This document shows positions 2,371 through 61,194 of a DNA stretch of 64,000 bases, piece after piece. Made by a program: the position numbers and the translations under genes. The number at the start of each line of letters is the position of its first letter. Within the stretch, counting starts at the first letter, position 1. Location: the sequence record NC_016163.1. One strand, written 5' to 3'. The notes under the pieces were generated by a model, which was not told where the DNA came from, made no database searches, and saw only the letters and a program-made list of their open reading frames with translations.

Positions 2371-4464
2371 ATGGCTGATAAAATCATTGTACGTTATAAG
2401 GATACCCCTTATACTGTAAAAACTCTTTTAGATTTTCTTTCAGAATGTGCCAAAGTATATTATAGTACTGGTAAAAGAAAAATAAGTGATGAAGTTTTTG
2501 ATAAACTTCAACTTGTTTATGAAAAGCATTCTGGTAAAAGACTTCCAGTTGGTGGTAAAGTTGATGTAGGTAATACTCTTAGCTTAAGCCACTCATATGA
2601 GGACTTTGCTGGTACTCTTTTCAAGACTAAATCACCGGAAGAGGTCTACGACTGGATGAGGCGAAAAGGTATCAAACCTTCAAAAGCTGGAGTCCAGATC
2701 GCACTTAGTCTAAAAGCTGACGGTCATTCTATCACGGTAGAAACTAAGTATAACAAGAAAACTAAAGAACAGTATATACATAAAGCTCTTACCCGTGGTA
2801 AAGATGGCGTAGGTAAAGATCTCACTCCTATTTTTAAAGAATACGAACATTTACTTTACCTTCCAGTTATTGATGGAAAAAATTATGCTGTAGGTTATGA
2901 AGCAGTAATGACTTATAGTAATTTTACATTGTTCCATGAACAAGAAAAAGAAACATTTAACAATCCTCGTTCTATCATAGGCGCTATCCTATCAGATAGA
3001 GGTAATCAGTATTTTCCATATATTAATCTCATTGCTCTCAGGATTAAGACTGAAGATGATGAGCTTAGTCGTATTGATGCATTGGAGTATATTAATGAGA
3101 TTAATGAATCTCAGAATGAAGAAATTGATTTCGGTTTTTGGGTGGGTGAATTAACCAATAAAAAGAATAAAGGATATATGCTTGGTGGCGATGATTATAA
3201 GGATTTCAATGAAGCCTTAGAAGATTTCTATCAATGTGTAATTCAAAATCGTGAAGAAATTGATATCATGATTGATGGGGTAGTAATTGAGGTTCTTAAT
3301 GAAGATAAACGTCGTTCATTAGGTTACTCTGATTATGAACCTAACTTTGCAGCGGCTCTTAAATTCCCTCCAGCTGAAAAAGAAACTACCGTCGAAGATG
3401 TTAAATGGTCTGTAGAAGGTAAGTCTGGACGTTACACTCCAGTAGTGCATTTTAAACCAGTTAGTATTGATAATAACTCATACGTTAAAGTATCTCTTGC
3501 TAACTATAAACGGTTTAAGAATCTAAATCTTCATAAAGGTGATTCAATCTTATTTACTAGACGTAATGATGTATTAGGTTATGTTGATAAATTAGATGAA
3601 GATGCACCACCTAAAGGTGAAGCTTTTAAAGCTCCTAAGTTTTGTATTCATTGTGGAGAATCTTTAGCAGTAGTAAGTGCATATTTAGAATGCGTAAATC
3701 CGGCTTGTAAAACTAACGAGCTTGGTAATATTCTCAAGTTTATCGATGTACTCAATCTTAAGTTTATTGGTAGGAAAACGATAGAAAAACTATATGATAA
3801 TAAAATCATTAGTAAGTTCTCTGACTTCTTTGAATTAACTGATAAAGATTTTAAGAAAATTAAGTCCATTGATGGACTTGGAAATCATGTAATTAAGCTT
3901 ATTAATCAGTTAGTAGATAAGCTCAGTAATGAAGAAACTCCCGATTATCTATTCCTTGGGGCGTTCAATATCCCGTTGATCAGAGATGGTCGAGCTGAGA
4001 AGATCTTAAAAGGTATTACCCTTCCAGAGATTATTGATCTTATTGACTCTAAAGATAATGAGGCTATTTACCGAATCCTTTCTAATACTAATAATATTGG
4101 TATTAAGATTGTAGATGAACTGGCTAAAGCTTTAGGGGATGAAGGATATTATCGAAATGAATTAGGTATTCTATATGAGAATATGAATATCATTGATTCA
4201 AAGATTGATCAATCATCTTTAGGTAAAGATTTTGTATCTTTGACTTTCGTTCATACTGGTAGCGCTAAGCCACTGAAAACTAGGGATGAACTTAAACGCA
4301 TTATTTCTAGTAAAGGTCATAATTTAGTAGGAAGTGTTTCCAATAAGACAAACTATCTCATAAATAATGACGTAAATTCCACTACTGATAAGAATAAGAA
4401 AGCTAAAGAGCTTGGTATTCCAATCATTACTGTGGAAGAATTTGTGGCAATGATGAATGGCTAA
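2371..4464 (+). CDS. ligA: NAD-dependent DNA ligase
   Basis: Adenylation motif SLKADG, DGVV motif, Zn finger CIHC...CVNPAC, HhH repeats, C-terminal BRCT (VSNKTNYLI...KAKELGIPII). Confidence 0.95.
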   Translation: MADKIIVRYKDTPYTVKTLLDFLSECAKVYYSTGKRKISDEVFDKLQLVYEKHSGKRLPVGGKVDVGNTLSLSHSYEDFAGTLFKTKSPEEVYDWMRRKGIKPSKAGVQIALSLKADGHSITVETKYNKKTKEQYIHKALTRGKDGVGKDLTPIFKEYEHLLYLPVIDGKNYAVGYEAVMTYSNFTLFHEQEKETFNNPRSIIGAILSDRGNQYFPYINLIALRIKTEDDELSRIDALEYINEINESQNEEIDFGFWVGELTNKKNKGYMLGGDDYKDFNEALEDFYQCVIQNREEIDIMIDGVVIEVLNEDKRRSLGYSDYEPNFAAALKFPPAEKETTVEDVKWSVEGKSGRYTPVVHFKPVSIDNNSYVKVSLANYKRFKNLNLHKGDSILFTRRNDVLGYVDKLDEDAPPKGEAFKAPKFCIHCGESLAVVSAYLECVNPACKTNELGNILKFIDVLNLKFIGRKTIEKLYDNKIISKFSDFFELTDKDFKKIKSIDGLGNHVIKLINQLVDKLSNEETPDYLFLGAFNIPLIRDGRAEKILKGITLPEIIDLIDSKDNEAIYRILSNTNNIGIKIVDELAKALGDEGYYRNELGILYENMNIIDSKIDQSSLGKDFVSLTFVHTGSAKPLKTRDELKRIISSKGHNLVGSVSNKTNYLINNDVNSTTDKNKKAKELGIPIITVEEFVAMMNG

Positions 4465-4666
4465 ACTCAGTCAACAGCTCAATCAAATTTTTGTGGACAT
4501 CGAAAAAGGAATCGGTAATAGTCATGTTGTCGATTCCCTAAAATCCGGTATAGACTATGCATACATAGTCGAAGGTAAAAATACTAAGCTTTGGATAGAT
4601 GTAAAATCCTTAGATAGCGGATTTTTAGATGAACTAATCGATTTAAAATTAAGTAATAAACTCTAA
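4457..4666 (+). CDS. Hypothetical protein
   Basis: Overlaps ligase stop; lies in the operon. Confidence 0.6.
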   Translation: MAKLSQQLNQIFVDIEKGIGNSHVVDSLKSGIDYAYIVEGKNTKLWIDVKSLDSGFLDELIDLKLSNKL

Positions 4667-4676
4667 GGAAATTGAA

Positions 4677-5009
4677 ATGGAAAATGTAACTAATCTTGTT
4701 CAACTTGCTGGAAATGTAGTAAAAGATCCTAAATTCATCTTTGATGAGAAGAACGATTTTCGTGTTCTGAATTTTACTGTAGTAGTTACTCGTCAGTATG
4801 TTCGTGATGGTCGTTTTGCAAATGATAAATCATTCCATAAAGTCTCTGTTCGTGGTAAGCTTGCAGAAGAATACAAAGACAAGATTAAGAAATCTAGTGG
4901 CGTACAAGTTACTGGATATTTACGTAATCGCAATGTAACTAAAGATGGCGTACGTTATCCAATTACTGAAGTTGCTGTAGAAGAAGCAGGTGGAATTGTC
5001 TGCCTGTAA
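4677..5009 (+). CDS. ssb: Single-stranded DNA-binding protein (OB fold, no acidic tail)
   Basis: NLVQLAGNVVKDP...FTVVV...FHKVSVRGKLAE...VQVTGYLRNR...ITEV matches the SSB pattern. Confidence 0.85.
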   Translation: MENVTNLVQLAGNVVKDPKFIFDEKNDFRVLNFTVVVTRQYVRDGRFANDKSFHKVSVRGKLAEEYKDKIKKSSGVQVTGYLRNRNVTKDGVRYPITEVAVEEAGGIVCL

Positions 5010-5020
5010 AAAAAGTAAAT

Positions 5021-5058
5021 AAACCCCTATATCCCCTTTTGAGGGATATAGGGAGTTT
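5021..5058. terminator. Bidirectional terminator between convergent genes
   Basis: ccctatatccc / gggatataggg stem with A run upstream and T run downstream. Confidence 0.75.
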
Positions 5059-5066
5059 CTTTTTTT

Positions 5067-6023
5067 TTAATTTCTAGTTAAATCTAAGAACAGATTAGCG
5101 ATTTTAAGACCTTCTTTTCCACTTACTGATTCAAAGATAAAATCTTTAATCAAGTTAGAGGAATAAGCGCTACAGATAGTATAACCTAAGAATCCAGATA
5201 GCAATTCAATCATAAAGAGAGATTTTTCACCATACATAGTGATCATCTTTCTAATGAAAGTATTTACATCTAAGTCTTTAACTACAGTATAAGCCTCAGC
5301 TAGACCAGAGAATAGTCTTGGAAGAGATACTAAGTTTTCATCATTAAAACGTGTACCAAACTCAGCAATAGCTGAATCAGCGATACTAGATTGCTGTTTT
5401 GCTACTTGCATTGCAATGGCATTTCTAGTTTCTTTGTTTAGAGGGTGATCTCTCTCAACCACATATGATAAGAAGAACTTAGCGATACTATAGCTAATAG
5501 CTGCCGATTGTACTGGAATAGAAGCAGTAGCATACATACTATCGATTACACGCATAACCATACGAGTATATACTATAGCGGCGTTGGTCAGTAAAGGGGT
5601 AGAATATACAAGTTTATTGTAATTTTCAGCATACTTACGTTGAACGTGAGCATACATTAATACACCAAATACTTCTCTTGGCTGATAGCTACTGAAACTA
5701 TATTTGTCTCTAATCTTGATTTTACCAAACAAGTTAGCGATACCAGTATAGTCTTTACCGTTATTGATAGCCCATCCAGTCAAATTCAGACCTGGAACAT
5801 ACAAACAATCTATATGTCCTGATTCTAAATCATCGAGAATTACCTGCTTACCAGATACACTAATCTTTGACTTAATATCACTTGAGATAAGATTCAGTTG
5901 GTCTTTAGTGAGACGATAGTCTTCAGCCTTAGTCATTGCACCTGTTACTTGAGTAAGCATTCGGTTAGCATTGACGATCTCACCAATATATGTATCTTTT
6001 AAAGAACGAAATTTGAAAGACAT
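5067..6023 (-). CDS. Hypothetical protein, probably virion-associated
   Basis: 318-aa ORF in a late minus-strand operon. Confidence 0.6.
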   Translation of the reverse strand: MSFKFRSLKDTYIGEIVNANRMLTQVTGAMTKAEDYRLTKDQLNLISSDIKSKISVSGKQVILDDLESGHIDCLYVPGLNLTGWAINNGKDYTGIANLFGKIKIRDKYSFSSYQPREVFGVLMYAHVQRKYAENYNKLVYSTPLLTNAAIVYTRMVMRVIDSMYATASIPVQSAAISYSIAKFFLSYVVERDHPLNKETRNAIAMQVAKQQSSIADSAIAEFGTRFNDENLVSLPRLFSGLAEAYTVVKDLDVNTFIRKMITMYGEKSLFMIELLSGFLGYTICSAYSSNLIKDFIFESVSGKEGLKIANLFLDLTRN

Positions 6024-47608: not shown

Positions 47609-48931
47609 ATGGTTAAGACTAAAAAAGTAGATATCGCTCCAGAAGATTCATATACTGGTAAGGATATTAAAGAATTACCATATCCAGTCAATATTCAGAC
47701 TCGTCCACAAATGTATGTGGGGGAAACTGATTCAACAGGTAAACTGACTTGTATCCGAGAAATTCTTAATAACTCAGTCGATGAATTCTTGGCTGGACAT
47801 TGTAACCAAATCAATATTTATCGTTTGGATATCGACCACTATGTTATTGAAGATAACGGTCGTGGTGTTCCATTTGATAAACATGAGACTGGTAAAAATA
47901 CTCTAGAAACAATCTTTGGCGTACTACATGCTGGTCGAAACTTTAAGAAAAAGACTGTATATAGTACTGGTCTTAACGGTGTTGGTGCGTCAGTAGTAAA
48001 CGCATTATCTGAAGTATTCAAAGTTACTTCTCACCGTGGAAATGACGTAGGTATTATTGAATTCTCAGATGGTTACAAACAGAAAATCACTCTGTCTACC
48101 GTTACTAAACTCAAACTCAAATTCCAAAAGGGATTTGATAAGAAAGGTACTGGTGTAGAATTCAAATTTAATCCAGAGTTCTTTGAACCGGATTCTGATT
48201 TAGATATCCAGGAAGTACTTGATTTAATCCGTAAAACTGCTTACATGGTAAGCGGATTAAAGCTTAAATTCGTGGATATGGTAGATTCTAAAAATAACGT
48301 AACTTTTGATTATGAGAATGGTGTTTCAGATCTCTTAGAAGAGATTAACCCAGCCTCTATTATCAAACCAGCGTATTTTAAACCTGTCACTATTAATGAA
48401 ACCAAAGTTGAAGTAAGTTTCAGCTTTAGTGAAAAATTTGATAGTGAAAATATTGAATCGTTCTGTAATACCATCCGTACTGGTGATGGCGGTGTACACG
48501 TTACAGGATTTAAACGTAGTTTCAGTCAAAAAGTTACCAATTTCATTAAAGAAAATGGTTTAACTAAAGAAAAGATTGAAAACAGTGACGTATTTGTAGG
48601 CTTGAATGCAGTAGTATCTGTATTCGTATTCAATCCTAAATATTCTACTCAGACTAAGCAAAAACTTAGTAATACTGAAGTAGAAGGTCATGTATTGCGA
48701 GCCATGAATAAATGGCTTGATGAATGGCTTGAAGCTAACCCTAAAGAAGTTAAGACTCTTGCTACTAAAATTGCACTTACTGCTAAATCTCGTATTGCTC
48801 AAAAGCGTGCTTTAGACAGTGTTAAGAAAGAGCAATCAGGTACATTCCTCACTACACTTGCTGCTCCAGAGAAGTTTACGGATTGTAACAGTGATGATCG
48901 AATGGAATGTGAATTATTCTTAGTTGAGGGT
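47609..48931 (+). CDS. gyrB: DNA gyrase subunit B, exon 1 (join 47609..48931,50027..51097; 797 aa)
   Basis: GHKL motifs EILNNSVDE, DNGRGVP, GLNGVGASVVNALS; ends at ELFLVEG; promoter AACA-aagttt-TA at 47574-47585. Confidence 0.93.
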
Positions 48932-50026
48932 TAAAATGGCTCTCATTAAACCTCTTTAATTGTCTGGAAAACCTTAATTACCGCGAATTAAGACAACCAG
49001 CAGCGAAGCTTATGGTATTAACACCTATAAAGGATTATAGGATGCATAAGAACGTTCAACGACTATCGAAAGTACTTATGATAATTCATAGGGTAAATGA
49101 GTAGAGTAGCGCCAAGTGGTAGGTATCATAATGATAATAGTTATGAATAAATCCTTTAAAGCGAAACGGGAGGCAAAGGATTGAAGATATAGTCTGATCT
49201 GCATGGTGACATGTAGAGTTAGTTGAAAGTGATTTCTTAACAAAATCTTAGTATCTAAGAGGATTTAATTTATGCCAGTTAAGAAAACACATGCACAATT
49301 CGTAAAAGAAGTTGAATTAAGATTTGGAAAAGAATATACAGTTTTAGGGGAGTATAAAAACACTCATACTCCAATAAAACTGCGGCATAATAAATGTGGT
49401 AATATATGGGAAACTACTGCTCCATATGATTTACTAAAACCAAAACCTAATGGTTGTAAATTATGTGCAATTAATAGATCATTTCCATTGACTACTAAAG
49501 AATTTTCAGTTAAACTAAATGCAATTCATAATAATTCTTATAAAGTTCTGCAAGAATATAAGAATAATAAAACCAAAATTTTAGTTCGCCATAATTGCGG
49601 ATATGAATTTATGGTTAAACCGAATAGCATTCTAACAGAAAAGTTTAATTGCCAATCATGCCAAAAAACAAATTCAGTAATAAGTGATTCAATTGCTGAA
49701 TTTCTTAATGAAGAAAATCTTAATTTCATCCAAGAAAAAAAGTTTAAATGGTTAAAATATGAATCTCTATTATCTATAGATTTCTATCTGCCAGATTTTA
49801 AAATTGGTATAGAAGCTGATGGAGAACAACACTACATTCCTAAACGTGGTGGAATTAAAGAGTTTGAAAAAACTCTTAAGAGAGATTTGATCAAATTTAA
49901 ACTTTGTAAAGAACATGGTATAGAAATACTGAGAATACCTAGTTTTTTAACTAAAAAAGAAATTTCTTTGTATCTTGGAAAACTTCTTTTAGAAAGAAAT
50001 GTCTTTCAACTAGATTAACACAAATG
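48932..50026 (+). mobile_element. Group I intron in gyrB (1095 nt) with homing endonuclease
   Basis: Exon ends in U48931 and intron ends in G50026; splicing restores EG|DSAGG; P1 ugagggu/gcucuca; core P aattgtctggaaa, Q caaccagcagc, R gttcaacgacta, S aagatatagtct. Confidence 0.93.
49272..50018 (+). CDS. Intron-encoded endonuclease: Zn-ribbon repeats plus Vsr-like PD-(D/E)xK domain
   Basis: Two repeats ending in CxxC; IDFYLPDFKIGIEADGEQH. Confidence 0.8.
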   Translation: MPVKKTHAQFVKEVELRFGKEYTVLGEYKNTHTPIKLRHNKCGNIWETTAPYDLLKPKPNGCKLCAINRSFPLTTKEFSVKLNAIHNNSYKVLQEYKNNKTKILVRHNCGYEFMVKPNSILTEKFNCQSCQKTNSVISDSIAEFLNEENLNFIQEKKFKWLKYESLLSIDFYLPDFKIGIEADGEQHYIPKRGGIKEFEKTLKRDLIKFKLCKEHGIEILRIPSFLTKKEISLYLGKLLLERNVFQLD

Positions 50027-55917: not shown

Positions 55918-57255
55918 ATGCCAGAGATGAATCCGGATACTATTCGCAATCAGGTTATCGAAATCGCTAAAGGTGAAGCGGTTATCACTGTTCCAAATCC
56001 GGTTCCTTGCAGCCTGGATACTTTCCTGTCTGCCATGACTTCTCCTGAAGTCGTAATCAACACTTTCCTGCCAAGTGATCTCTATGACAAAGACTCTCTG
56101 AATGAAGAAGAATTCAAAGAGATCGCTTTCAGCGTTTACACTAACGTGCTGTCATACACTTACGGCGCTACCAACGTTGTACCTTTCAGCTTCGACGACA
56201 ACTGTCCACCGCTGGCCCGTCAGAACCTACTGCTGCAAAACTTCATTGAAGCTGGCGGCACCAAAGAAACTCTGGACGTTCTGGGCGTAAAAGGTTTTGA
56301 GAAAGCTTTTTCTATGCTCCTGCTGCCGCTGGGTATCGCTCAGTGTGCTAACATGACTGATGTTCGTAAGAGCATCGAAGCCCTGAACAAAATCAACGAT
56401 GGCGAAGACCGTATTAAAAATAACATCAACGTTATTATGGGCTTCAACATTCCACTGGAAACCAGTCTTGATGATATTGAAGCGCTGGCGCGTGAAGGTA
56501 ACATCGACGTTAACCTGTTCCTGGCTCGTCAGAAACCGGAATTCAATACCGTTGAAGTAATTCATCGCTTCAAAGAATTCCTGGATCCTTCCCGCGTTAT
56601 GATTCAGGTTGATTTCACTGAAGACGCTTTCCGTACTTTGCTGGATGAAGGTTATTTCAGCGATGTACGTGATCAGCTCTTCACGGTTGCTAATCCAATG
56701 ATCATGGAGCTGGCTGATCTGCGTGAGAAGTATTGGGATAAATTCTCATGGGAACGTGCGCTGGTTAAGTACACTTTCTCTGAAGAAATCCTGAATCGTA
56801 TTATCAGTGAAGGTAAAATGAACTGGGCTGTAGCTTCTGTGTTCCAGGTAATGTCTGATGAAATGATTCTCGCTAACAACGATGAAATCACTTTCTGGCG
56901 TCCTGAGTTCAACTTTGACTACTGGTTCAAGGGTGAAAACGACAATAAAGAACTGCGTGCAGAATACGCTAAGCATACTCCTACCAACGAAACTGTTGCA
57001 TGGAATGAAGTTATCCGTCGTCATAAAGACAAGCAGGAACTTCTGATGCTGGCTGCAATCACCGTTTCTGAAATGCCGATTGCTGTTGAACTGACTGACG
57101 AAAGCGGTTCCACCGTTGAATCCCGTGTAAGTAACCCGCAAAATGATAAACCAGTTGATCAGCGCATCAAACACAAACTTCTAATTCCAGAAGTAGTGGA
57201 TGGTAAACTTCAGTATTCTGAAGAAAAAGATCTCTCTAACTTTTATGAAGGTTAA
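55918..57255 (+). CDS. Strongly codon-biased early protein of unknown function with Trp-containing helical repeats
   Basis: RBS gagga; many CTG/TTC/ATC/AAC codons unlike its neighbours; own promoter and UUCG terminator. Confidence 0.8.
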   Translation: MPEMNPDTIRNQVIEIAKGEAVITVPNPVPCSLDTFLSAMTSPEVVINTFLPSDLYDKDSLNEEEFKEIAFSVYTNVLSYTYGATNVVPFSFDDNCPPLARQNLLLQNFIEAGGTKETLDVLGVKGFEKAFSMLLLPLGIAQCANMTDVRKSIEALNKINDGEDRIKNNINVIMGFNIPLETSLDDIEALAREGNIDVNLFLARQKPEFNTVEVIHRFKEFLDPSRVMIQVDFTEDAFRTLLDEGYFSDVRDQLFTVANPMIMELADLREKYWDKFSWERALVKYTFSEEILNRIISEGKMNWAVASVFQVMSDEMILANNDEITFWRPEFNFDYWFKGENDNKELRAEYAKHTPTNETVAWNEVIRRHKDKQELLMLAAITVSEMPIAVELTDESGSTVESRVSNPQNDKPVDQRIKHKLLIPEVVDGKLQYSEEKDLSNFYEG

Positions 57256-57264
57256 TTGATCTAT

Positions 57265-57290
57265 AAAAGATCCTCTTCGGAGGATCTTTT
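57265..57290 (+). terminator. UUCG-tetraloop intrinsic terminator
   Basis: aaaagatcctc-ttcg-gaggatctttt plus T tract. Confidence 0.85.
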
Positions 57291-57405
57291 TTTTTTTTAT
57301 ATTCTTTTTATGTATATATAATTATAAGGATATTAAAGGAATTTAAAAAGTTTCCTTTAACCTAACAAATATTTGTATATCACAATAAACAGAGGAATAT
57401 AAGTT

Positions 57406-57615
57406 ATGGCTGAAAACATTGTTCAGCAATCCCTTGAGGAAGTATTTGCAGAACGTTTCAAAACTTATGGTAGTGAAACTGTAAAAGAACGTTCTATTCC
57501 TTCTGTAGAAGATGGATTCTTACCCGTAATGCGTCGTATTATTTATACTATGTATAAAGAAGGTGCTTATCCACGTTTTACTAAAGCTGCTCAATTTGTA
57601 GGTACTACTATTGGT
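57406..57615 (+). CDS. gyrA: DNA gyrase subunit A, exon 1 (join 57406..57615,58906..61194; 832 aa)
   Basis: RSIPSVEDGFLPVMRRII, KAAQFVGTTIG; promoter AACA-aatatt-TG at 57364-57375. Confidence 0.92.
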
Positions 57616-58905
57616 TAACTTATATCTTTTTAGTACTATCTAGTGATGTATCCTCCCAAAATTGATCCCTAACAGTGTTTTAGTATCTATAAGGATCAAT
57701 TATGAAAAGTAAATCAAAACAACTTAAGATAATTAGCAAGAAGTATTTAAATGCATTAGATTTCTATTATAGTAATGACCATTCGGCAACTTTTGTAGCC
57801 AAAAAATTTCAGCTATCAAAAAATACTTTGTTGAGAATGGTTCGTCTTGGAAATTTTGAAGAATTACCTGATGGTAATATAGCTGAAAAAGATCAAGATT
57901 ATTATATGTGGAAAAATATAATGCATATTTACAAAACTACTAATAAATCGGCTAATGAATTATGTCTAGAATTCAATGTAGGTAAATCATCCTTTGCTAA
58001 AAATCTTAAATATTTTAATTTAAGTTATAAAGGTAGGAGTAACCTGATTGAATTTAAAAGAGATATATTTTCTAAAATAGATTCAAGCGATAAAGCATAC
58101 TGGCTTGGGTTTATTTTAGCTGATGGTTGCATTTATAAAAATGAATTGCGGCTTAAATTAGGGAAAGTAGATTACGTTCATTTGCAAAAATATTGTGATT
58201 TTTTAGGGCTGAGTCATAATCATATTGTTAAAGATGCACATACAATAAAAGTAATTGTATGTGATAAAAAAATGATTATCGATCTTAATAAATTAAATAT
58301 TTTTTCTAAAAAATCATGTAAAGAAATTCCACCCATAATAGATCCTATTTTTCATAGAGATCTATTACGTGGATTCTTTGATGGCGATGGATGTATTAAA
58401 ACAAATCTTGCTTCAATATCTTTAGTAGGTAGTAAGGATATGATGGATTTCTGCAATAAAGTATTCCATGAAGAATTAGGAATACCTTTAGGTAAAGTCT
58501 ATTCAGATAAAAAAGTTTATAGATTGGCTTGGTATAGTCTTTTCAATAAACAAAGTATCCTTAGTTGGTTATATGATGGGAGTCATACATATTTAGATAG
58601 GAAATTTAGCTTAGCTAAAAAGATTGGCCGTCTATGAAAGTAATTTTATAGATTATTATTGGGGAAGAAAACGGGAAGGGTTTAGCTATCCTAATCCGAC
58701 TGGAAGGCTATATTTAAAAGTATAGTCACAGGCAACGCATAGTAGGTGAACCTTATAGCGATATAAGAATATAATCCTGCCACGAGTCCCCGACATCCTA
58801 TATAGGATGAAAAGATATGCTAGGCTGGATTGGAAAAGACCAATCGATGAAAATGAGGGAAACCTCCAGAGAGTAAGATAAAAAGCTTACTGTTAATAAC
58901 TACCG
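57616..58905 (+). mobile_element. Group I intron in gyrA (1290 nt) with LAGLIDADG endonuclease
   Basis: Exon ends in U57615 and intron ends in G58905; splicing restores IG|RYHPHGD; core after the ORF: aaaacgggaagg, aatccgac, ggcaacgcatag, aagatatgctag. Confidence 0.92.
57702..58637 (+). CDS. Intron-encoded two-motif LAGLIDADG homing endonuclease with N-terminal HTH-like region
   Basis: AYWLGFILADG and LLRGFFDGDG motifs. Confidence 0.9.
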   Translation: MKSKSKQLKIISKKYLNALDFYYSNDHSATFVAKKFQLSKNTLLRMVRLGNFEELPDGNIAEKDQDYYMWKNIMHIYKTTNKSANELCLEFNVGKSSFAKNLKYFNLSYKGRSNLIEFKRDIFSKIDSSDKAYWLGFILADGCIYKNELRLKLGKVDYVHLQKYCDFLGLSHNHIVKDAHTIKVIVCDKKMIIDLNKLNIFSKKSCKEIPPIIDPIFHRDLLRGFFDGDGCIKTNLASISLVGSKDMMDFCNKVFHEELGIPLGKVYSDKKVYRLAWYSLFNKQSILSWLYDGSHTYLDRKFSLAKKIGRL

Positions 58906-61194
58906 CGTTACCACCCTCACGGTGATAGTTCTTGCTATGAATCAATGGTTGGTATGTCTCAAGGATTCCGTAAATTGAATCCACTTATTGACCCTCAAGG
59001 TAATAATGGTTCAGTAGATGATTTTAAGTCATTTGCGGCAATGCGATATCTTGAACTGCGTCTTTCTGCTTTTACAAGAGATGTATTCTTCTCTAACTTC
59101 TCTGAGAAGAATAATAACTTCGTTCCTAACTATGATAAAACTCATTTGGAACCGGAAGTATTTACTCCAGTAATTCCAACCATTTTAAATAACGGTATTA
59201 CCGCTATTGCATCAGGCTTCGTCTGTAACCTTCCAACACATCGTGTAACGGATATTGTAGAAGTTACTAAACGTCTGATTGCTGATGCAGACATTAGTGA
59301 TAAAGAACTAGCTAAAGGTTTTTATCCAGACTTTCCTTTAGGTGCCACTATCATTAACCGTGATGACCTGATTGATATGTACACCAAAGGTCAAGGTGTA
59401 ATTCAGGTTCAGGCAACATTAGAAGATGGCGATTTTAAAGGTAAGCCAGCTATTATTGTACGTGATCTTCCTCCAGAAGTAAGCGTTAACAAAATACTTG
59501 AACAAATTCGTTTTGGTCTTACGCCAGAAGATGTTAAAAAAGCTAAGAAAAAGAAAACTCTTACTAAACCTGGATGCCTAATTGAGCTTATTCAGGATGT
59601 TAAAGATATCAGTACCAAAAAAGAAGGTATCGGTATCGCATTACTTCTTAAAAAAGGTGTAGATTCCGGTACCGTTAAAAACGTATTGTATAAATCTACA
59701 AGTCTACGTTATTCTGTAAAATATCAGGCTAACGTACTTATTGAAGGTAAGCTAGAATCTAACTGTTCTCTTAAGAAACTACTCAGTACTTGGGTGGCTT
59801 TCCGTCGCAATACAGTTCGTCGTATTCTTAATATTAAGATTGCAGATTATTCTGAACAGCAATCTCTTAAACAAGCTTTAATTAAAGCCCTAGGCAAGAT
59901 CGATAAAGTTATCGAAATTGTTCAAAATGCATCTGATAAGAAAGAAGCTATTGATAAAATTCGTAAGCTTCTCTCAATTGGATTCAACCAAGCAACATAT
60001 ATCGTTGAAACCAAACTTTATCAGCTATCAAAAATGTCTGTCCAAGATCTTAAAGACGAAATTAAGACTCTTGGAGAAAAGATTAAAGAATCCGTAGAAA
60101 CTATTTCTGATGATCATCGTATTGATGAAATCATTGTAGAAGAAATGGATAGAATTATTGAGAAACACTGTAAGAAAGAAAAACGTACTACAGATGTAAT
60201 CAATATTACTAGCTCTCTTGATGATGTTAAAGCTTTTGTTCAACCAGAGAATTTAGTAATTGGTTTTGCTAAAGAAATGGATGATTTGGATAATGCAGGT
60301 TATTCCTCTAATGCTTATGTATTTGCCAAATCAACTGATGAAATCATTTCTGGTGATACTCGCGGTCGTAAAGGTCAGAATTTTGTACCTAGTACGGTTA
60401 AGAAAGTAATTATTGAGACATTCACTGTAAATACTCATGATTATATTCTATGCTTTACTACTGACGGTAAATTGATTATTCGTCAGGGATATGAATTCAA
60501 TATGTGGAATAAACCTATTGGGGCTATTCTTAATCTGGAAGGTCGCCGTATTAGTACTATTATTCCTATCACTGAAAAAGATCTAGACAAATATCTTGTA
60601 TTTGTCACTGAAGCAGGTTATATGAAACGTATCCCTGTTGATGGATTTGATCTTAATCGTAAAGCGGCAGTTATTGCTATTAAACCTACAGAGGGCGATA
60701 TTCTTAAAGCCGTATCTTTGTCTCTTTCTGAGATTGATAATGTGTTTGTATACTCTAATGAGGGTAAGGCTCAACGTCTGTTAGCTTCTCAGATTGATGA
60801 AATGACCAGAGCATCTGCCGGACGTTGCCGTTTGACACTAGGTGAAGATGAATACGTAGTAGGTCTAACTGTAGGTAATACAGATACTACTAAAATTCTG
60901 ATGTGTGCAAGTAATGGTAAAGGTAAGATCATTGACCTTGAAGAATTCCCACTTCGTCGTGGTGATAAAGGTCGTCGTTCTATGCTTAAAGCAATTACTC
61001 TGGCAGAAGGGGAAATGCTTATTGGAGCTTTGATTGTCAAAGAAGAAGATTCTGTAGCATTCAATACTTCTAATAACAAAATTGTGTCTCTGAATGTAGC
61101 TAATGTTACCACTCTTGGACGTAATGCCAAAGGTATGACTCTAGCTAAGCCAAGTGAAGGTGAGATTATTACATCCATCACTTATTCTAATTAA
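58906..61194 (+). CDS. gyrA: DNA gyrase subunit A, exon 2 (catalytic Tyr, coiled coil, beta-pinwheel CTD)
   Basis: [31 protein letters not shown] repeats, GyrA-box-like TRGRKGQ. Confidence 0.93.

Follow-up and report, generated by a model that had tools for sequence, protein, structure and literature searches.

The interrupted gyrA gene of phage phiR1-37

We analyzed a 64,000-nucleotide (nt) stretch of sequence record NC_016163.1, the genome of Yersinia phage phiR1-37, with attention to a gyrase gene that appears to be interrupted by a mobile group I intron. This stretch is called the window below; the region is 100% identical to the phiR1-37 record AJ972879.2, and window base 57300 corresponds to base 243300 of that record. 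The phiR1-37 record carries three separate coding sequences (CDS) at this place and no intron annotation: g327 at 57406-57618 (‘DNA-gyrase IV A-subunit’), g328 at 57702-58637 (unnamed in the AJ972879.2 record and called ‘endonuclease’ in RefSeq), and g329 from 58945 (‘DNA-gyrase A-subunit’). On the basis of homology, however, g327 and g329 are a single gyrA gene, and g328 is a predicted homing endonuclease borne by an intron within it. The resulting features, all on the plus strand, are as follows.

57406..57615, + strand: gyrA exon 1 (g327), 70 codons, last residues T-I-G; from Pfam DNA_topoisoIV and the ParC alignment
57616..58905, + strand: predicted group I intron, 1290 nt; U57615 is position -1 and the omega-G is 58905
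57616..57618, + strand: UAA stop in frame with exon 1, identical with the first three bases of the intron; read from the sequence
57702..58637, + strand: predicted double-motif LAGLIDADG open reading frame (ORF) g328, 311 amino acids, in the loop of the extended P1; from Pfam and PHROG
58906..61194, + strand: gyrA exon 2 (contains g329), begins R-Y-H-P-H-G-D; from the ParC alignment and Pfam

The two junctions read att ggt / taa ctt … cta ccg / cgt tac cac cct cac ggt gat, where the slashes mark the proposed splice sites. Exon 1 covers positions 1-42 of the Pfam profile DNA_topoisoIV, and the frame from 58906 covers positions 45-431 of the same profile plus DNA_gyraseA_C (the GyrA C-terminal repeats), so that the DNA_topoisoIV domain and the C-terminal beta-pinwheel run continuously over the junction. 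In the alignment with Staphylococcus aureus ParC (2inr_A), residues 26-95 (…VGDVIG) correspond to exon 1 and the exon-2 frame aligns from residue 96 (QYHPHGDSS…). Given that exon 1 matches ParC up to residue 95 and exon 2 matches it from residue 96, the cut of 57616-58905 is exact to the residue. An initial annotation of this DNA had proposed that removing these bases restores IGRYHPHGD, and the ParC residues flanking the joint bear this out. It had also regarded the start at 58945 as an artefact; homology already begins at 58906, and the ATG at 58945 is, judged by this homology, indeed an annotation artefact. The bases U57615 and G58905 conform to the boundary rules of group I introns. G58905 directly adjoins exon 2, and a final G is present in 15/15 of the relatives described below. 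As in phiR1-37, a stop codon is met one to three codons past exon 1 in relatives.

The product of g328 contains the two motifs …WLGFILADGC… and …LLRGFFDGDGC…. It scored 25.9 bits against Pfam LAGLIDADG_3 (cut-off, 22.5 bits) and matched the endonuclease family PHROG 4645 with an E-value of 2.9e-86. These two motifs and the profile matches identify it as a predicted LAGLIDADG endonuclease.

The ribozyme core and its relatives

We aligned 15 members of the intron family from the guide sequence through the 3' end of the intron. RNAalifold recovered P2, P3, P4, P5, a P7.1-type helix, P8 and three P9 helices from this alignment, with compensatory changes in 35/47 pairs. The full core model, which consists of these helices plus P6, P6a and the P7 pseudoknot, was paired in 92.2% of cells and showed compensatory changes in 45/64 pairs. 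As controls, we slid the pairing partners by 1-3 columns, which left 33-46% of cells paired, and we made 500 shuffles; 0/500 shuffles matched the values observed for the core. The predicted elements are as follows.

58631..58652, + strand: P2 hairpin, 58631-58639 with 58644-58652, loop GUAA; 6/7 pairs compensatory, 97% of cells pair
58659..58793, + strand: block of P3, 58659-64 with 58788-93; 6/6 pairs compensatory
58672-74 with 58696-98 and 58677-81 with 58688-92, + strand: P4 and P5; per-helix covariation
58700-02 with 58729-31 and 58706-11 with 58722-27, + strand: P6 and P6a; per-helix covariation
58737-41 with 58816-20, + strand: P7 pseudoknot, 5 base pairs (bp)
58742-46 with 58776-80, + strand: P7.1, with an inner GCGA hairpin at 58752-67; 4/5 pairs compensatory
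58794..58820, + strand: P8 (58794-98 with 58805-09; 5/5 pairs compensatory), then J8/7 and the P7 3' strand
58825..58905, + strand: P9 domain and 3' tail, ending in the omega-G 58905 and holding the 26-nt family motif
58825-27 with 58867-69 and 58828-33 with 58840-45, + strand: P9.0 and P9a; covariation model
58855-58 with 58863-66 (GAAA loop) and 58872-77 with 58886-91, + strand: P9b and P9.2; covariation model

P7, in which the guanosine-binding site is predicted to lie, was paired in 15/15 sequences (100% of cells) with a single covarying pair. The order of helices in the model is P3, P4-P6, P7, P7.1, P3', P8, P7' and P9. In other words, P3-P8 and P4-P6 follow the canonical order with covariation, and an extra helix of the P7.1/P7.2 kind lies between P7 and the 3' strand of P3; the predicted architecture of the intron is of the subgroup IA type. 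A further pairing, between AUUAUUA in J2/3 and UAAUAA in the 3' tail, was considered and rejected, as the variation on its 5' side is uncompensated in the alignment. The initial annotation had called the element a group I intron whose catalytic core lies wholly 3' of the ORF. The exact exon continuity, the covarying core and the homologous introns at the same gyrA site support the first of these claims, and the core, P2 to P9.2 at 58631-58905, agrees with the second.

In a blastn search, the core matched the Bacillus jumbo phages AR9/PBS1, Internexus, Goe21 and BpSp at about 74% identity; a search of the phiR1-37 genome with the core found no copy besides itself. The 26-nt P9 motif GATGAAAATGAGGGAAACCTCCAGAG was present exactly in more than 107 IMG/VR contigs (loci L005-L111), a number that is a lower bound, and many of these contigs encode LAGLIDADG-type C-termini (…YLDRKY…) directly 5' of the core. 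Judged from these matches, the motif-bearing contigs represent a large and widespread phage intron family that the Rfam model RF00028 scores below its threshold.

The guide sequence, the extension of P1 and the ORF across them

P1 is predicted to form over a long range from the following segments.

57612..57617, + strand: P1 5' strand (exon UGGU and intron UA), pairing with 58625-58630 and including U57615·G58627
57624..57634, + strand: P1 extension 5' strand AUCUUUUUAGU, 11 bp with 58614-58624; 57618-57623 form a 6-nt bulge
58614..58624, + strand: P1 extension 3' strand GCUAAAAAGAU, within the ORF
58625..58630, + strand: P1 3' strand and guide sequence (UUGGCCG region), within the ORF; GCCG is invariant and adjoins P2

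By eye and by folding, no usable guide was found in the first 86 bases of the intron, and the first 35 nt folded at -2.5 kcal/mol (z -0.2), in line with the earlier failure to find a local P1 partner. P1 is instead predicted to consist of U57612-G58630, G57613-C58629, G57614-C58628 and U57615·G58627 together with, on the intron side, U57616·G58626 and A57617-U58625. The last exon base, U57615, thus wobble-pairs with G58627 within P1. The duplex energy at this site was -14.9 kcal/mol and that of the runner-up was -14.0 kcal/mol.

It is the relatives that single out this site. GCCG (58627-58630 in phiR1-37) is invariant and is followed at the next base by P2 in 15/15 relatives. The short P1 loops (L1) of L006, L024, L028, L037 and L061 put GCCG 7-10 nt downstream of an exon whose last letters are GGT. 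AR9 and BpSp, whose gyrA introns are free of ORFs, have GCCG 45-65 nt after …ATTGGT or …GTAGGT, at the site used in phiR1-37 (IG/EYHPHG), and in BpSp the exon GGU can be seen by eye to pair with GCC. Since homologues keep GCCG adjoining P2 and the short-loop members place it near the exon GGT, G58627 is expected to pair with U57615. The predicted guide is therefore GCCG at 58627-58630 with U57615·G58627; it is established by homology, pairing strength alone being indistinctive. The initial annotation had named 57611-57621 with 58620-58630 as the best pairing. Its guide and its U·G pair are upheld by homology, but the pairing is not distinctive by itself, given about ten comparable sites, and its inner part (57618-57621 with 58620-58624) is superseded by the 11-bp extension helix. 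Its proposal that about 1 kb, including the endonuclease gene, is inserted in L1 agrees with the short-L1 homologues, which place the same GCCG directly before P2.

The extension helix had not been noticed in the initial annotation. All long-loop members have such a helix, of 9-11 bp, at the corresponding position, and among the six independent introns no two of these helices are alike in sequence; the 5' side begins 5-8 nt past the splice site and the 3' side ends 2-5 nt before GCCG. Besides that of phiR1-37, they are as follows.

AR9 intron 1 and Goe21: 5' side AGUUUCAUUGC, 3' side GCAAUGAAAUU
BpSp: 5' side GAGUUUUUAC, 3' side GUAAAAAUUC
AR9 intron 2: 5' side AUCCUUUAAU, 3' side GUUAAAGGAU
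L051: 5' side AAUUUUUAAC, 3' side GUUAAAAAUU
L068: 5' side AAUCUAAGUAU, 3' side AUACUUAGAUU

The phiR1-37 extension was equalled or exceeded by 14/5000 shuffles, and the corresponding range over the six introns was 0.06-1.6%. Six independent occurrences at the same place amount, at the level of sequence, to covariation of the whole helix. The extension duplex is also the most stable partner that the 5' segment has along the intron, and an in-silico mini-intron (57600-57640, a four-base linker and 58608-58660) folded into P1, the bulge, the extension and P2. The terminal loop that remains beyond the extension, 57635-58613, measures 979 nt and holds the endonuclease gene.

The 3' end of this gene leaves the loop and enters the ribozyme. 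Codons 305-311 and the stop codon (A-K-K-I-G-R-L-stop) first cover the 3' strand of the extension helix, then the guide sequence and finally the P2 5' strand, within which the stop codon UGA (58635-58637) lies. That the guide bases encode the end of the ORF (KIGRL*), as previously claimed, can be read directly in the sequence. Homologous LAGLIDADG ORFs in Goe21, L051, L066, L068 and L083 likewise cross GCCG and stop 7-38 nt later. The g328 product is 39% identical to the Goe21 intron ORF and 28-39% identical over shorter stretches to the others, and beyond the conserved YL(D/E)RK motif the C-terminal tails are unrelated among homologues. The homologous ORFs cross GCCG in three reading frames; therefore, these nucleotides are conserved at the RNA level, not at the protein level. 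Such encroachment of an ORF on a ribozyme is what the ‘core creep’ model predicts (PMC3073962).

Among these relatives, L051 (IMG/VR, minus strand; oriented 4164-5071) has a same-family intron at a second gyrA site, …HG/NNGN…, which is the site of AR9 intron 2. The LAGLIDADG ORF in its P1 loop contains an in-frame TAG 13 codons past the ATG, which may mean that the gene is decaying, that the sequence contains an error or that the stop codon is recoded.

Translation, splicing and the probable spread of the intron

Upstream of the endonuclease ORF, its Shine-Dalgarno (SD) sequence at 57691-57695 is predicted to be buried in a hairpin (-9.8 kcal/mol).

57660..57701, + strand: SD-burying hairpin, 9-bp stem 57660-57668 with 57693-57701; ends at the ORF start codon

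Hairpins that bury the SD sequence were also found in Goe21 (L003:2133-2160; 13 bp, z -2.2) and in L068 (L068:3026-3059; 14 bp, -19.5 kcal/mol, z -5.9), and the sequences of the three hairpins are unrelated. No internal promoter resembling the annotated phiR1-37 promoters was found 5' of the ORF, and a sigma-70 scan gave fewer sites there than in shuffled sequences. Since the ORF overlaps the extension, the guide and P2, translation of its end and formation of P1/P2 would be mutually exclusive in any one molecule. T4 td/I-TevI is the sole experimentally studied case; there, translation of the endonuclease inhibits splicing (PMC3073962), ribosome entry into the core impairs splicing (as related in PMC3073962, citing Gibb and Edgell 2010), and the ribosome-binding site of I-TevI is likewise sequestered (PMC3073962; PMC3984707). 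The initial annotation had suggested that ribosomes finishing the endonuclease would cross the guide and could couple translation to splicing. The overlap of the ORF end with the guide is as it described, but as regards a positive coupling, the SD hairpins and the I-TevI/td case point in the opposite direction, and our analysis makes antagonism the more likely form of the link.

Taken together, we consider it highly probable that phiR1-37 gyrA contains a mobile group I intron with a long-range P1, an extension clamp and an endonuclease ORF that overlaps the guide and P2. From these features we infer self-splicing of the RNA in vivo and a mutual antagonism of translation and splicing. According to this explanation, a mobile IA-like intron would have inserted between the Gly and Arg codons of …IG/RYHPHGD. 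The long-range P1 (57612-57617 with 58625-58630) would select the 5' splice site, and the 11-bp extension would clamp P1 across the 979-nt loop. The endonuclease ORF would have crept into the ribozyme until its last eight codons became the 3' strand of the extension, the guide and the 5' strand of P2, and a ribosome terminating at 58635-58637 would unwind the extension, P1 and P2. The SD hairpin probably keeps translation of the ORF low, and a ribosome on exon 1 would be halted at the splice site by the intron-initial UAA.

Several observations weigh against this explanation. P1 is short, with 6 bp of which three are G·U, and P10 has at most 2 bp. At least 7 contiguous bp around U57615 can be formed at 10 intron G sites (shuffled mean, 6.0), and the 5' splice sites used for the metagenomic relatives are our own deductions, not measurements. 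The SD hairpin of phiR1-37 is modestly better than shuffles (z -2.4). An Rfam scan of 56500-60000 (3.5 kb) gave zero group I matches, and a search of 331 nt gave a match to RF00028 at 58607-58843 that stays below the gathering score (20.6 against 50 bits; E 0.0034), although the expected elements appear in it in the expected order. Because only the narrow search produced even this sub-threshold match, Rfam is unusable as proof; the same model gives 69.8 bits to an intron in gyrB within the window, so that the gyrA intron family must lie far from the Rfam seed. In Logan contigs from four RNA-seq runs of infected cells, 57200-59500 was represented by one unspliced contig each and no joints. These contigs are uninformative rather than negative, as minor forms are dropped and the libraries may contain DNA. 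The paper describing the phiR1-37 RNA-seq makes no mention of introns.

One alternative is a real intron with its guide elsewhere, either at 58116-58127 (G58119, 12 bp) or in the UUUAGCUA stretch at 58681-58688. The former, where the first LAGLIDADG motif is encoded, pairs over the longest uninterrupted stretch (9 bp with the exon and 3 bp with the intron), at -14.0 to -14.5 kcal/mol, which comes near the duplex energy of the favoured site. However, neither place is followed by P2, and 58681-58688 is the conserved P5 loop of the family. The ORF-less relatives lack any region equivalent to 58119 and yet keep GCCG and P2. At G58119, moreover, 4/9 exon-side pairs are G·U, and the letters are constrained by the protein motif (…LADG…). 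A guide at another place is therefore most improbable in our view; candidates at G58119, G58564, G58614 and 58681-88 were all rejected on homology. As a separate observation, the first-motif codons ttaGCTGATGGT (58116-58127), which pair with the junction over 12 bp, are the same in Goe21. This pairing is probably fortuitous, though it could act as a decoy through which P1 misfolds.

We also considered the possibility that the element no longer splices, being the decayed remnant of an intron, or that it is an endonuclease gene inserted on its own; GyrA would then be produced in two pieces (g327 and g329) or be missing. The three separate CDS of the public records and the unspliced contigs of the RNA libraries are what such a state would give. 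Against it, phiR1-37 retains all invariant columns and helices of the core, the exons join with no residue lost or gained, and the endonuclease ORF is unbroken and has both motifs. In addition, no start codon stands at 58906, where exon 2 begins, and initiation at ATG 58945 would lose a conserved segment of 13 residues. We regard this alternative as very unlikely. Alternatively, splicing might need translation of the ORF, with the passing ribosome resetting or chaperoning P1 or the LAGLIDADG protein serving as a maturase; the overlap of the ORF with the extension, guide and P2 is conserved family-wide, and there are known examples of LAGLIDADG maturases and of ribosomes acting as chaperones on T4 introns (PMC3984707). 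However, AR9 introns 1 and 2 and the BpSp intron are free of ORFs and yet retain this core, in a gyrase gene that lacks an endonuclease. The SD-sequestering hairpins favour translational repression, and in td, I-TevI translation inhibits splicing (PMC3073962). Such a dependence thus seems quite unlikely. It is also rather unlikely that the conserved passage of the ORF through the extension, guide and P2 is a selected switch rather than passive core creep, or that the endonuclease doubles as a maturase of the long-range P1. If there were such a switch, a terminating ribosome would melt P1/P2 and reset the choice of the 5' splice site, and the output of GyrA and endonuclease would be partitioned between molecules or over the time of infection.

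Returning to the mobile intron with a clamped P1, its closest counterparts are those in the Bacillus phages. The AR9 gyrA gene (AR9_g044) is annotated as a three-piece join. AR9 intron 1 and the BpSp intron are of the same ribozyme family as the phiR1-37 intron, with cores about 74% identical in nt, and share with it the site IG/xYHPHG, GCCG, an extended P1 and a P2 directly after the guide; AR9 intron 2, at the second gyrA site, is another member of this family. The AR9 and BpSp introns differ in having no ORF and a P1 loop of 15-37 nt, compared with 979 nt in phiR1-37. The unannotated gyrA intron of Goe21 (vB_BsuM-Goe21) is at the same site and of the same family, with a LAGLIDADG ORF that runs from the P1 loop through the guide and stops in P2; however, this ORF crosses GCCG in another frame, and the extension helix has another sequence. 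Outside this family, the tRNA-fMet intron of Synechocystis PCC 6803 has, like phiR1-37, its ORF in P1 overlapping P1/P2, by 61 nt (PMC3073962, Table 1), although I-Ssp6803I is a PD-(D/E)XK enzyme in a bacterial tRNA gene and the likeness is drawn from the tabulated description. T4 td resembles phiR1-37 in that the 3' end of the ORF lies within essential helices and an in-frame stop directly follows the 5' splice site, but its ORF occupies the P6 loop and extends over P6a/P7 rather than P1 and the guide, and I-TevI is a GIY-YIG enzyme (PMC3073962). In Physarum PpLSU3, the ORF of I-PpoI is located in P1, as in phiR1-37 (PMC3073962, Table 1), but it does not overlap the core, and this intron lies in nuclear rDNA and encodes an enzyme of the His-Cys box type. 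Thus, an ORF in P1 that overlaps P1/P2 is an arrangement already described. To this, the present analysis adds a helix that clamps P1, an overlap with the guide that recurs throughout the family whatever the frame, and the finding that a family missed by standard models is widely distributed.

The gyrB intron of phiR1-37 lies at 48933-50026 of the window and matches RF00028 at 48911-49216 (69.8 bits, E 1.2e-15). Exon 1 (g311) ends in …L-V-E-G, where GGT is directly followed by TAA, and exon 2 (g314) resumes with D-S-A-G-G-S after …aaatg, so that the Toprim sequence EGDSAGGS is restored. An ORF without a Pfam match, g313 (49272-50018), lies 3' of the gyrB intron core. As predicted from these features, both gyrase subunit genes of phiR1-37 carry introns, which belong to different intron families.

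Finally, the GyrA proteins of phiR1-37 and Goe21 are 27% identical over 773 aligned residues, which is no closer than bacterial ParC (33-35%). The endonucleases are 39% and the cores about 74% identical, as against 27% for GyrA (58906-61191 of the window compared with L003:3391-5598), a pattern that suggests horizontal homing into the conserved YHPHGD site. The intron probably moved between phages of Gram-negative and Gram-positive hosts and was not co-inherited with the gene. The reading proposed here would correct the annotation of a replication gene in a model jumbo phage, and it points to a clamp of 9-11 bp that would let P1 close over a 1-kb insert. The ORFs that cross one guide in three frames, with their varied stops in P2, may also serve as a natural data set for core creep and for interference between translation and splicing.

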